A stretch of DNA of 63,283 nucleotides, the filler included, from Octopus bimaculoides (lineage: Eukaryota): assembly GCF_001194135.2 (NCBI RefSeq). It is 6 parts of 5 records of this genome, joined end to end, with 100 filler letters (N's around TTAATTAATTAA, not from the genome) between each part and the next. Parts side by side here need not be neighbours in the genome. Positions count along the whole stretch, not along the records: positions 52,187 to 61,334 come from NC_068987.1; 5 more parts are not named here. One strand, written 5' to 3'. Numbering within the stretch: position 1 is the stretch's first letter; the number at the start of each line of letters is the position of its first letter. A program made the position numbers and the translations under genes. Shown piece after piece: positions 56,316 to 60,468 of the stretch. Below the pieces are notes generated by a model. That model was not told the origin of the DNA, did no database searches, and worked only from the letters and a program-made list of their open reading frames with translations.

Positions 56316-56684
56316 TTAAGACTTTATGTAGCGAAGGAAAAATTTCTTAAAAAGCTTTACTATCAATTTGAAGATTTTCCACCGATAACATCTTTTGCTG
56401 ATATCTTTCAGTAATTTATCTCGTTTTTCACCGTAAGAGGAAAAGTACTTTTTGGCTTCAGGGGTATATTTCTTCTCCACAGGAATGATATCGGCAAATT
56501 TCCAACTCGACCAGTCGTTATTCACTTCATTTAACAACTGTATCCTCTTCTCAGTGGTCGGAACGACATCCGGAGGCGTCAGACAAGAGAAGTTGCTGGG
56601 TACCGTGAGATTCTTAAACACGATAACACCTGGGATTCTAACCCAGCCTCCATATCGTGGATGAATGGCGAAACCATAAATTGT
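56316..56684 (-). CDS. MMACHC: MMACHC/CblC homolog, terminal coding exon (122 aa + stop)
   Basis: TIYGFAIHPRYGGWVRIPGVIV...PPDVVPTTEKRIQLLNEVNNDWSSWKFADIIPVEKKYTPEAKKYFSS vs human [21 protein letters not shown]...[47 protein letters not shown]. Acceptor tttcAG at 56685-56686. Confidence 0.95.
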   Translation of the reverse strand, partial: TIYGFAIHPRYGGWVRIPGVIVFKNLTVPSNFSCLTPPDVVPTTEKRIQLLNEVNNDWSSWKFADIIPVEKKYTPEAKKYFSSYGEKRDKLLKDISKRCYRWKIFKLIVKLFKKFFLRYIKS

Positions 56685-56931
56685 CTGAAATACATAGAGC
56701 AAGTAAAAAGAAAAAGAAAAAAACTTATGAATCATTTCTTGTAAAAATATATGGTTATAAAAACGATAGAAATTACCTTCATTCAAAAGTGTTGAATGGA
56801 GATAGATTTTTCGATCACATTGTTTACATAGACCTATTTGTATACTAAACGTCGTAACTCAGTGTTGGTAGCTCTAATTTCTATAGAAAAGTTTTAGTCT
56901 ATTACTTCATATATATAATTATATATATATA

Positions 56932-57173
56932 CAGGGTGGCCCAAAAGTAGGTTTACCGTTGTTCAACTATCTCTTTCGCATTCATATATTAACAGCTTAG
57001 ATCTTAATTGTAAAAAAAAAAAAAACATGAAACCATTATTCTATGCTGATTTAATTAATTTTGTCAAGCTCCCTTTTCAGTTTGTAAGATAAAAATTTAA
57101 ATGTAATAAAATGTTTTAAAAGAAGTTTAAAGTGCCTACACGATAACTGCAAATCTACCTTTGGGCCACTCTG
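56932..57173. mobile_element. Tc1/mariner-type MITE (242 bp) in the last MMACHC intron
   Basis: TA|CAGGGTGGCCCAAAAGTAGGTTT ... AAATCTACCTTTGGGCCACTCTG|TA: imperfect TIRs and TA target site. Confidence 0.75.
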
Positions 57174-58510
57174 TACATGTGTGTGTGTGTGTGTGCTTGT
57201 GTGTGTTTGTGTTTGTGNNNNNNNNNNNNNNNNNNNNNNNNNNNNNNNNNNNNNNNNNNNNNNNNNNNNNNNNNNNNNNNNNNNNNNNNNNNNNNNNNNN
57301 NNNNNNNNNNNNNNNNNNNNNNNNNNNNNNNNNNNNNNNNNNNNNNNNNNNNNNNNNNNNNNNNNNNNNNNNNNNNNNNNNNNNNNNNNNNNNNNNNNNN
57401 NNNNNNNNNNNNNNNNNNNNNNNNNNNNNNNNNNNNNNNNNNNNNNNNNNNNNNNNNNNNNNNNNNNNNNNNNNNNNNNNNNNNNNNNNNNNNNNNNNNN
57501 NNNNNNNNNNNNNNNNNNNNNNNNNNNNNNNNNNNNNNNNNNNNNNNNNNNNNNNNNNNNNNNNNNNNNNNNNNNNNNNNNNNNNNNNNNNNNNNNNNNN
57601 NNNNNNNNNNNNNNNNNNNNNNNNNNNNNNNNNNNNNNNNNNNNNNNNNNNNNNNNNNNNNNNNNNNNNNNNNNNNNNNNNNNNNNNNNNNNNNNNNNNN
57701 NNNNNNNNNNNNNNNNNNNNNNNNNNNNNNNNNNNNNNNNNNNNNNNNNNNNNNNNNNNNNNNNNNNNNNNNNNNNNNNNNNNNNNNNNNNNNNNNNNNN
57801 NNNNNNNNNNNNNNNNNNNNNNNNNNNNNNNNNNNNNNNNNNNNNNNNNNNNNNNNNNNNNNNNNNNNNNNNNNNNNNNNNNNNNNNNNNNNNNNNNNNN
57901 NNNNNNNNNNNNNNNNNNNNNNNNNNNNNNNNNNNNNNNNNNNNNNNNNNNNNNNNNNNNNNNNNNNNNNNNNNNNNNNNNNNNNNNNNNNNNNNNNNNN
58001 NNNNNNNNNNNNNNNNNNNNNNNNNNNNNNNNNNNNNNNNNNNNNNNNNNNNNNNNNNNNNNNNNNNNNNNNNNNNNNNNNNNNNNNNNNNNNNNNNNNN
58101 NNNNNNNNNNNNNNNNNNNNNNNNNNNNNNNNNNNNNNNNNNNNNNNNNNNNNNNNNNNNNNNNNNNNNNNNNNNNNNNNNNNNNNATATGTGCATATAT
58201 ATACACAGACATGTACATGCCTATACATATATGTATATATACATGCATATATGAGTACAGGACGTCAAAAAAAAAAAACGTTAACAAAATGAGAAACGCG
58301 AACATAAAAAACAAAAGCATGGAAAACGAACTTTTTTTCGAACAACGAAAGAAACAAACCGGGAAACGCGACAGGCAACATAAAGAACATTCCCTTCATC
58401 AGGTGTCCCCTGTTTTATCTACTCCGCGTTTCGGAGATAGGGGAAGGGACTGTTCCAGTGACCGTAAGAAGTAAAAGATAACAAACAAAAACAACCTTAA
58501 ATGAAATAAC

Positions 58511-58825
58511 GGTACTACTAAAGCAGCACGGTCCCGAACGCGCAGTCGCGCGTCCGGGCTAGCTAGTCGTGAGTGGTCGATCCTAACCCTAACCCTATTC
58601 CTAACCCTAACCCTAACCCTAAACACGTATTCATTTGCACACGCGGGTTAGGGATAGGGTTAGGGTTAGGGTTAGGGATAGGGTTAGGGTTAGGGTTAGG
58701 GTTAGGGACAGGGTTAGGGTTAGGGTTAGGGTTAGGGTTAGGGTTAGGGTTAGGATCGACCACTCAAGACTAGCTAGCGCGGACGCGTGACTGCGCGTTC
58801 GGGACCGTGCTGCTTTAGTAGTACC
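58511..58825. mobile_element. 315-bp MITE with inverted telomeric arrays, 9-bp TSD (Merlin- or Mutator-like)
   Basis: About 73-bp TIRs starting GGTACTACTAAAGCAGC (3 mismatches). Internal (CCCTAA)~7, short spacer, (TTAGGG)~18. TGAAATAAC duplicated at 58502-58510 and 58826-58834. Confidence 0.88.
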
Positions 58826-58984
58826 TGAAATAACATCATTCATTATATTGAACAACATGCCTGCAACAGCCAGCAACATCAACAACGGCAGTAGCAGCAT
58901 CAAGAAGCATTACAATGACGACAACATTAATAAAGCAGACAATAAGAATGTTAAATTATTGAATATTAGGTTAATTTTACTGAC

Positions 58985-59134
58985 CTTATTTGCGGGCCAG
59001 GTATCCGCAGGGACATCTTTGCGCTGATAGTAATATGCGGCCCCCGACACGTGTGCTGCTGTTTGTGATAAAATAACTGGATGTCCGGGACCCAGCATGT
59101 TGTAACTAGACAGGAAATCGGTTTCAGGATATTT
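58985..59134 (-). CDS. MMACHC: MMACHC/CblC homolog, coding exon equivalent to human exon 3 (50 codons)
   Basis: [50 protein letters not shown] vs human ...[31 protein letters not shown]. Acceptor tgtAG, donor GTCAGT, phase 0/0. Confidence 0.95.
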
Positions 59135-59432
59135 CTACATTGAAAGAATTCAGAGGATAAAAGGTTCAAATCATAACGAAGTGAAGAAGGATTTACAAAA
59201 GCGTGTGTAATGTAGAGCAAGGGTCCCTTTGTGACAGAAGCTGATGTAGCAAACCAGCGCACAATAGCCAACAGTGTAACATACATTATTGTAATACGTA
59301 CTCATGAAACAGACAAACGTTTGGTCTAAATTGGGTGTTGCAGACATCGTTGTCACAGATATCTGTGTATAATTCTCATACATTAATGCAACACATTCAT
59401 GTAAAATACGAATTGTTGCACAGCAACCCCTA

Positions 59433-59760
59433 GGAGTAGGAGCACTCCGTCGGTTACGACGACGAAGGTCCCAGCTGATACGATCAATGGAACAGCCTGC
59501 TCGTGAAATTAACGTGCAAGTAGCTGAGCAAGCCACAGATACGTGTACCCATAACGTAGTTCTCTGGGAGATTGAGCGTGACACATCGTGTGACAAGGCT
59601 GGCCCTTTGAAATACAGGTACACCTCATTTTTGCCAGCTGAGTGGACTGGAGCAACGTGAAATAAAGTGTCTTGCTGAAGGACACAACGCGTTGCCGGGA
59701 ATTGAACTCACGACCTTACGATCGTGAGCCGAATGCCCTAACCACTAAGCCACGCGCCTT
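59433..59760 (-). mobile_element. tRNA-headed SINE family C, full length with 14-bp TSD
   Basis: Head GCGTGGCTTAGTGGTTAGG...GAGTTCAATTCCC (A/B boxes). CACAGCAACCCCTA duplicated at 59419-59432 and 59761-59774. Homologous to the 14693-15012 copy. Confidence 0.88.
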
Positions 59761-60261
59761 CACAGCAACCCCTATAGAAAACGCGCGAGTACACACATAC
59801 ACTAACACATAAACACACGCACACATACACACGCGCACGCGCGTATTTTAAATGTGAATGATTTCCTGAAAATACAGGGCACACAAGACAAACTTGTCCG
59901 ACCATTGTATTATCAGAAGCAAGAAACTAATAGTAGCTTGCATTTAAATACTATGTTCATTAGATAACACACGCACACGCACGCACGCACACACACACAC
60001 ACACACACACACACACACACACACACACACACACACACACACACACACACACACACACACACACACACACACACACACACACACACACATCTGTGTGTAT
60101 TCAAGACGATATGAATTTAATTTCATGAAAGAGGTACGCGTAGAAATTGTAATGTTTATGTCTTTCTCGAAGTGCATTAGTTCCGATCGGGAATCTAAAA
60201 CAGCTACAAATGCATTTGAGTGAATATCAACCGCTTAGATATAAAATATTTAATGACTTAC

Positions 60262-60468
60262 ATCGAAGAATTTCTTCAAGTAGTATTTATTACATTCATC
60301 AGTTGGACTCTTCTTGAGGATGTCATCAATGTTTGATTTGCAAATAAAAGGTTTCATGGCTTTCTCAAACACATCTGGTGCTGCCATAACAGTTAAGGCC
60401 AGCGTGTTATCCGTGTAGTTCAGATGAAATTTTTTGTCCATTGTATTAATGCCGTTGTAGCATCTCAC
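60262..60468 (-). CDS. MMACHC: MMACHC/CblC homolog, coding exon equivalent to human exon 2 (69 codons)
   Basis: Translates VRCYNG...KFHLNYTDNTLALTVMAAPDVFEKAMKPFI...SPTDECNKYYLKKFFD, matching human [47 protein letters not shown] (human sequence from recall). Acceptor ttaaccAG, donor GTAAGT, phase 0/0. Confidence 0.88.

Follow-up and report, generated by a model that had tools for sequence, protein, structure and literature searches.

What becomes of CblC, the vitamin B12-processing protein encoded by MMACHC, when the residues that hold its glutathione are replaced? The question is raised by a gene in a 63,283-nucleotide stretch of Octopus bimaculoides DNA (assembly GCF_001194135.2; six parts of five records, joined end to end with 100 filler letters between parts), hereafter the window, of which positions 52,187-61,334 come from NC_068987.1. 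An earlier note, made from the sequence alone, had described the gene, at 56,316-60,468, as an intact but catalytically remodelled MMACHC. The window holds exons 2-4 of O. bimaculoides MMACHC paralog A, which RefSeq labels as the ordinary enzyme; its tandem sister gene in the same species, paralog B, is XP_014782765.1. Our preferred reading, to which we give a probability of about one half, is that the residue changes would have left a protein that still binds cobalamin but has lost glutathione-dependent dealkylation, the housekeeping enzyme being encoded elsewhere.

Residues replaced and kept in the octopus protein

By homology the window protein is a member of the MMACHC family, as seen in its profile match, fold, cobalamin core and gene structure. 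The spliced product of the three exons (241 amino acids) is 100% identical to residues 29-269 of O. bimaculoides XP_014782776.1, and the exon model read from the window is that of RefSeq. Its match to the Pfam MMACHC family (PF16690) scores 203 bits, where the cut-off is 27, and spans positions 11-216 of the 216-position profile; a Pfam scan of the window protein returned no other family; human MMACHC chains match it at E ~3e-42. The AlphaFold2 model has a predicted local distance difference test score (pLDDT) of 95.6 and a predicted template modelling score (pTM) of 0.87, and its top 20 Foldseek matches are all MMACHC/CblC chains, with a template modelling score (TM) of 0.80 and a root-mean-square deviation of 1.6 Å to human 3SOM/5UOS. 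All three introns lie at the human positions (c.81/82, c.276/277 and after Gln143, from the human mutation table and alignment), as the earlier note had proposed, and at the same positions in O. vulgaris A and B and in an Argonauta gene, P0234.

In CblC, glutathione is contacted by D77, V79, D80, R161, R206, Y215 and R230 (PMC10740964) and anchored by the arginine triad R161/R206/R230; R161 and R206 are positions of human cblC disease, substitution of either abolishes or weakens glutathione binding in the human enzyme, the triad is conserved as far as Trichoplax, and loops 103-115, 196-203 and 231-238 move upon cobalamin binding (PMC9464900, PMC10740964, PMC11910325). This literature supports the premise on which the earlier note was built, that the three arginines form the glutathione pocket. 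In the window protein, one of the three is kept: R161 has become P165 (codon CCA, 56631-56633, exon 4) and R206 has become A211 (GCC, 56493-56495, exon 4), while R230 persists as R235 (CGA, 56421-56423). D77 and V79 are replaced by S and T in the motif SPTDEC (human D77-C82; 60292-60309, exon 2), leaving only D80, Y215 and R230 of the seven glutathione contacts. Further changes are the replacement of the PNRRP loop by GPGHP (59078-59092, exon 3), of D104 by S, and of W30 by C31 (TGC, 60460-60462, exon 2).

The cobalamin core of exon 3 is kept, with SQTAAHV at 59048-59068 and AAYYYQR at 59021-59041, as are IHPRYGGW in exon 4 and W200/W203; in the alignment, the cobalamin-core residues I115, Q118-T-A-A-H122, Y129-Q131 and G147 are all present. 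Two other differences from the human protein, S146Y and I169L, are also found in the catalytically active Trichoplax CblC. Exon 4 additionally encodes C246 (56388-56390) and a basic amphipathic C-terminal helix. Alignment and codons showed every substitution and kept motif listed in the earlier note to be real, and its codon argument is correct: adenosine-to-inosine (A-to-I) editing cannot restore arginine from CCA or GCC. Judging by the missing triad feature of glutathione S-alkyltransferase, the window protein should probably not be filed as a functional alkylcobalamin dealkylase.

One residue that the earlier note overlooked is Arg163 (human position 159; 56637-56639), which is octopod-specific and lies two residues before the lost R161. 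Across the seven intact octopod copies of A/B type (A and B in O. bimaculoides and in O. vulgaris, and three in Argonauta), it accompanies R161P in six, with serine in O. bimaculoides B. This co-occurrence speaks for a still-working B12 enzyme, in which Arg163 and Lys209 would stand in for R161 and R206 in a rebuilt thiol pocket, or which would perform only flavin/NADPH (reduced nicotinamide adenine dinucleotide phosphate) decyanation or reduction. The ligand of a rebuilt pocket would possibly be glutathione or another marine thiol, with A and B as tissue or substrate specialists. We consider a working enzyme unlikely: the cobalamin core, R230, D80 and Y215 are all kept, as it would need, and the RefSeq name is that of the enzyme, but the effect of R161 and R206 substitutions in the human protein counts against it, and the supposed replacements are not invariant, position 163 being serine in O. 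bimaculoides B and K209 being alanine in Argonauta copy 2. Separately, the K209 codon AAA (56499-56501), two residues before A211, could be recoded to arginine (AGA) by A-to-I editing.

Constraint and relatives of the octopus gene

The window gene is intact and under purifying selection. Compared with its O. vulgaris ortholog, A has a ratio of non-synonymous to synonymous differences per site (pN/pS) of 0.32 over the 211-codon core (Fisher p=1.2e-4), and the tandem paralogs A and B give a core pN/pS of 0.34 (p=2.5e-13); the 30-codon tail alone looks unconstrained, although its pN/pS of ~1.2 is not significant. A pseudogene is ruled out by the open frames, by canonical splice sites in two Octopus species and by a pN/pS significantly below 1. 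The earlier note was right to read three open exons with canonical splice sites as an argument against a pseudogene, and the ratio near 1 that it named, together with absent expression, as refuting its idea is not what the core gives. Purifying selection on the catalytic-domain exons would also be expected of the working enzyme weighed above.

A redundant duplicate drifting towards loss, its substitutions being tolerated damage, is by contrast highly improbable. Residues C31, G112, H115, P116 and A211 are invariant in 7/7 intact octopod copies, whose divergence predates the parting of Octopus from Argonauta; in addition, three species retain intact frames and splice sites, pN/pS lies significantly below 1, and the fold is predicted with great confidence. 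What speaks for drift is the presence of decayed copies in the octopus cluster (P0005, P0011 and a remnant in the O. vulgaris locus L002), together with a core omega of 0.3-0.45, above the lower values expected of a typical housekeeping enzyme. The extra copy P0005 in O. vulgaris, in which YYYQR has become HHYHH, illustrates what lost constraint looks like in the MMACHC family.

The loop-bearing exon has a history of its own. Between A and B, the synonymous divergence (dS) of exon 3 is 0.27-0.42 (window 58985-59134 against L002 17972-18121), compared with 0.85-1.1 in exons 2 and 4, suggesting a putative old gene conversion over this exon. Such a conversion may help to keep the loop similar in A and B, which weakens the case for its independent conservation in the two; the loop is nevertheless common to Argonauta and to the paralog group G3 described below.

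The changes were traced through 212 MMACHCs of at least 185 amino acids and, by an exhaustive HMMER search, through 1.84 billion representatives. In each of the seven intact octopod A/B-type copies the loop is GPGHP-like, position 161 is P or L, position 206 is A and position 30 is C, and among the 212 proteins R206A and W30C are exclusive to these copies. Loss of Arg161 was found in the same set only in cephalopods and Crassostrea, bar one tuatara model and one truncated frog isoform; the exhaustive search gave the same residue pattern, its other non-Arg161 matches looking like truncated or decayed vertebrate gene models. Canonical residues (PxRRP, R161 and R206) are the state of gastropods, most bivalves and a chiton, as well as a brachiopod, annelids, arthropods and deuterostomes. 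The substitutions are therefore not ordinary for molluscs, a possibility that the earlier note had named as one that would overturn its view: Babylonia, Littorina, Nucella, Patella, Haliotis, Pecten, Mercenaria, Mytilus and the chiton Liolophura are canonical. The remodelling it described stands, but not as a trait of the window gene alone, being common to 7/7 octopod A/B copies and partly to paralogs of cuttlefish and squid type.

In O. vulgaris, ~13 kb separates A from B, and there are also duplicates that are inverted and in part decayed, as well as a remnant that has diverged strongly; Argonauta hians has its three A/B-type genes on one contig. Part of the octopus cluster is an inverted segmental duplication, in which copies are decaying (CAI9725742 and CAI9725743). 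Beside paralog B in L002 (O. vulgaris OX597820.1), the divergent MMACHC-like remnant (..IAAHVTGVAYRYTQ.., ..AVHHKYGAWFTVPAV..) lies on the opposite strand; the features on that strand, at 29977-30159, 32830-32928 and 41576-41785, include a duplicate of B exon 2 that is inverted and 96% identical to it.

A triad-bearing octopod gene surfaced in the exhaustive HMMER search. Argonauta hians GAB1604734.1 (P0234) keeps W30, R161, R206 and R230, lies on a contig other than that of the A/B cluster, is divided into four exons by introns at the same positions and carries no signal peptide, which overturns the idea that octopods are without any arginine-triad MMACHC. The presence of this gene in a fellow octopod is a further point against the working-enzyme explanation, which draws some support from the lack of any triad-bearing copy yet seen in Octopus by word-indexed searches; these also missed the Argonauta gene, so that their lack of an Octopus counterpart is no evidence of absence. 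We infer that a triad-bearing gene exists in O. bimaculoides.

Three further groups, G1, G2 and G3, come from Sepia pharaonis and from transcript assemblies, probably of other cuttlefish and squids. G1 lacks a signal peptide and reads WVSLDA; the other two have one, G2 reading YFSLDA (CAE1172260.1) and G3 reading WFYMGP and sharing with octopus the loop MLG(R/K)GHP. In S. pharaonis, G1 and G3 are neighbours, and the 426-residue CAE1231185.1 (P0232) is a model that fuses two such adjoining MMACHC-like genes: its first part is G1, cut off after WVSLDA, and the rest is G3 minus the signal peptide.

In a neighbour-joining (NJ) tree with 300 bootstraps, P0234 grouped with G1 (54%), octopod A/B were sister to G2+G3 (65%), and all cephalopods formed one clade (63%) that joined Crassostrea (84%). 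By BLAST the oyster is equidistant from canonical molluscs, and its placement may be long-branch attraction. Two canonical proteins considered as cephalopod orthologs, P0029 and P0055, were rejected, as the tree puts both with bivalves, P0029 beside the venerid Mercenaria. Aspartate at human R161, in a motif W(V/I)SLD(G/A), was seen both in G1 (P0225 and P0163) and in Crassostrea-like proteins (P0222, P0268, P0334 and P0353), and one oyster copy has a signal peptide (MMWLFILLSLLTVFEAKG).

Given the separate triad gene in Argonauta and the tree position, the window gene is best read as a paralog. The best explanation of the sequence data is that octopod A/B would form part of a coleoid paralog lineage, lineage II, split from the housekeeping cytosolic MMACHC; the window protein shows the traits of this lineage, namely loss of R161, an MLG-x-GHP loop, a C-terminal cysteine, sequon enrichment and its place in the tree. 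The neofunctionalised paralog of the earlier note accordingly holds as to paralogy (gene B and the Argonauta triad gene), its loss of glutathione activity and new function being suggested by residues. Among the further MMACHC copies sought, gene B was found in O. bimaculoides, and a triad copy was seen only in Argonauta. In the literature searched, no paper connects MMACHC, by its short or full name, with octopus or with molluscs in general; a cephalopod-specific MMACHC paralog family is absent from the searchable literature.

Compartment and possible function

The sister paralogs point towards the secretory pathway. G2 and G3 have textbook N-terminal signal peptides, and the status of these sister paralogs as secreted types is one more argument against a working enzyme. 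The first 20 residues of the octopod proteins hold 0-1 charged residues and reach a 9-residue hydropathy maximum of 1.6-2.7, compared with 2.0-3.2 for the G2/G3 signal peptides and -0.1 to 1.6 for cytosolic forms. In the full-length window protein this stretch is uncharged with a maximum of 2.24, but it overlaps helix alpha-1 and forms no extension. N-x-S/T sequons number five in the window protein versus 0-1 in cytosolic forms, and cysteines C31, C71, C181 and C246 are invariant in the octopod copies, C246 occurring otherwise only in G2/G3. An unannotated upstream exon for a signal peptide was considered and set aside, with an in-frame stop six codons before the ATG of O. vulgaris A and no sign of an extra exon, although this does not strictly exclude one. 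On these sequence features, the octopod A/B proteins would plausibly be located in the secretory pathway.

The preferred reading, a cobalamin binder without glutathione-dependent dealkylation, can be laid out as follows. A coleoid duplicate (lineage II) would have split from the housekeeping cytosolic MMACHC and kept the MMACHC fold and the cobalamin-binding core, while its glutathione site was dismantled by the substitutions R161P, R206A, D77S and V79T and by the exchange of the PNRRP loop. The resulting protein would be a B12 binder, carrier or store, and its place of work would plausibly be extracellular or along the secretory pathway, both poor in glutathione. As this cosubstrate belongs to the cytosol, it would make sense for a protein that had left that compartment to lose the pocket. 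As the corrin-binding core is the best conserved part in every paralog and the thiol site is dismantled, a binder without glutathione dealkylation is the simplest reading. Retained B12 binding, lost glutathione chemistry and the compartment are in each case what we infer. More tentatively, and with rather less confidence than a coin toss would carry, coleoids may have turned a duplicate B12-processing enzyme into secretory-pathway cobalamin binders, an MMACHC-fold counterpart of transcobalamin and haptocorrin, with the pocket most fully erased in octopod A/B; oysters may independently have done something similar.

Several points weigh against this reading. At the N-terminus, the octopod proteins lack an extension, and the hydrophobic stretch with which they begin is itself helix alpha-1 of the fold; neither a positive n-region nor an obvious cleavage site is present there. 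G1 has no signal peptide, yet its R161 is aspartate; loss of R161 alone need not mean leaving the cytosol. Arg163, whose side chain would face the same way as that of the lost R161 if the segment forms a beta-strand, could rebuild a thiol site together with K209. NJ support at the deep nodes is modest (54-65%), and the word-indexed searches, which missed the triad MMACHC of Argonauta, returned none from either O. bimaculoides or O. vulgaris.

A different ligand or role has also to be considered, in which B12 would no longer be the partner and the protein would bind another corrinoid or a tetrapyrrole, or associate with membranes through its basic amphipathic C-terminal helix. Across all paralogs, no part of the protein is more conserved than the residues that line the site for corrin and dimethylbenzimidazole, and we regard this explanation as quite improbable, even though loop 103-115, which is reorganised on cobalamin binding, has been replaced, the cysteine set is octopod-specific, the tail helix is long, basic and amphipathic, and the tail is fast-evolving (at a pN/pS that does not reach significance).

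These genes form a natural, selectively maintained family in which the triad, otherwise conserved from placozoans to humans, has been dismantled while the cobalamin core is kept. The octopus protein would offer a separation-of-function variant, already made, with which to study the coupling of B12 binding to thiol chemistry in CblC, and would be, if secreted, a candidate extracellular B12-handling protein in invertebrates, which to our knowledge are without the transcobalamin family. As a description of function, the ordinary-enzyme name given in RefSeq and UniProt is probably mistaken, and one has to look elsewhere in the genome for the true housekeeping gene.

Exon structure, surrounding sequence and known counterparts

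The MMACHC gene fragment in the window comprises three coding exons on the minus strand, with all introns in phase 0 and bounded by GT-AG, as read from the sequence. Coding exon 2 (60262-60468, 207 nt) encodes residues 29-97 of XP_014782776.1, between the acceptor ...aaccag|GTG and the donor GAT|gtaagt; coding exon 3 (58985-59134, 150 nt) encodes residues 98-147, between ...aatgtag|AAA and AAG|gtcagt; and coding exon 4 (56316-56684, 369 nt including the TAA stop) encodes residues 148-269, from the acceptor ...atttcag|ACA. Exon 1 (28 amino acids, MLASELVTLLAVFNATLNQYGYESHPFA) lies outside the window piece, beyond its edge; intron 1 measures 7.5 kb in O. vulgaris, and its 3' part here (60469-61334, minus strand) consists of 866 bases of repeats only. 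Intron 2 (59135-60261, minus strand) contains a (CA)n microsatellite and a stretch of the tRNA-like short interspersed nuclear element (SINE) type. Intron 3 (56685-58984, minus strand) contains an assembly gap and a telomere-repeat palindrome.

The gap, a run of N at 57218-58186, is wholly within intron 3. Across it, the exon 3/exon 4 junction ..WPANK|TIYGF.. aligns to human ..WGNQ|RISGV.. without an indel, and the O. vulgaris ortholog is colinear with the sequence on either side (58892-58828 with L001 22248-22312; 56792-55918 with L001 22820-23697). No exon is therefore missing, and the gap is harmless for the finding; both an exon hidden in the N run and a misjoin across it are excluded by the continuous protein alignment and the colinearity of both flanks. 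Gap and palindrome fall within a 2,035-nt stretch whose O. vulgaris equivalent is 507 nt with no exon. The palindrome, which adjoins the gap (58511-58825, 315 nt), has 112-nt arms that are 96% complementary around telomere-type (CCCTAA)n/(TTAGGG)n repeats and is not found in the orthologous O. vulgaris intron.

A foldback element of ~520 nt in intron 1 (60786-61304) is arranged around an (ATG/ATA)n microsatellite, with inner arms of 122 nt (89% complementary) and outer arms of 55 nt (96%). The tRNA-like SINE-type stretches lie at 59655-59775 (intron 2) and 60955-61010 (intron 1); on the window piece ARAGORN found no tRNA, and Rfam gave only sub-threshold matches to microRNA families, on repeats. 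Downstream of the gene, 53072-53988 shows 93.7% identity with O. vulgaris across 920 nt, compared with 83-91% for the introns; it has inverted matches inside and no long open reading frame, and could be a conserved non-coding element, an untranslated region or a shared repeat. A second assembly gap downstream of the gene (54677-54878, 202 N) also has flanks colinear with O. vulgaris.

One known counterpart is human MMACHC/CblC (cyanocobalamin reductase/alkylcobalamin dealkylase; 3SC0, 3SOM and 5UOS), with which the octopus protein shares whole-domain homology at ~39% identity, three phase-0 introns, the motifs ILxQTAAHV, AAYYYQR and GxxIHPxYGGW, and R230, D80 and Y215. It differs in R161P, R206A, D77S, V79T, D104S, W30C, the exchange of PNRRP for GPGHP and the new arginine at 159, and also in its uncharged hydrophobic N-terminus, five sequons and four lineage-invariant cysteines; its C-terminus is a basic amphipathic helix, whereas that of the human protein is a disordered proline-rich tail.

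Within cephalopods, Argonauta GAB1604734.1 and G1 share with the window protein the family, the four-exon structure, the NJ cephalopod clade and the loss of RR from the PNRRP loop; GAB1604734.1 differs in keeping the triad and W30, in its charged amphipathic N-terminal helix and single sequon, and is ~37-40% identical to the window protein. G3 (the C-terminal half of CAE1231185.1 and transcript assemblies) has the loop motif MLG-x-GHP in common with the window protein. G2/G3 and the octopod copies are NJ sister clades with a C-terminal cysteine, sequon enrichment, R161 loss and WP(A/K)NKTIYG in common, but in G2/G3 helix alpha-1 is preceded by a cleavable-looking signal peptide of 20-25 amino acids, and R206 and W30 are retained. 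The vertebrate carriers transcobalamin, haptocorrin and intrinsic factor have no sequence or fold relation to the octopus protein, which matched MMACHC alone in Pfam and no such chain in Foldseek; the likeness to transcobalamin-type carriers would be a possible analogy of function only, that of a non-catalytic cobalamin binder outside the cytosol.

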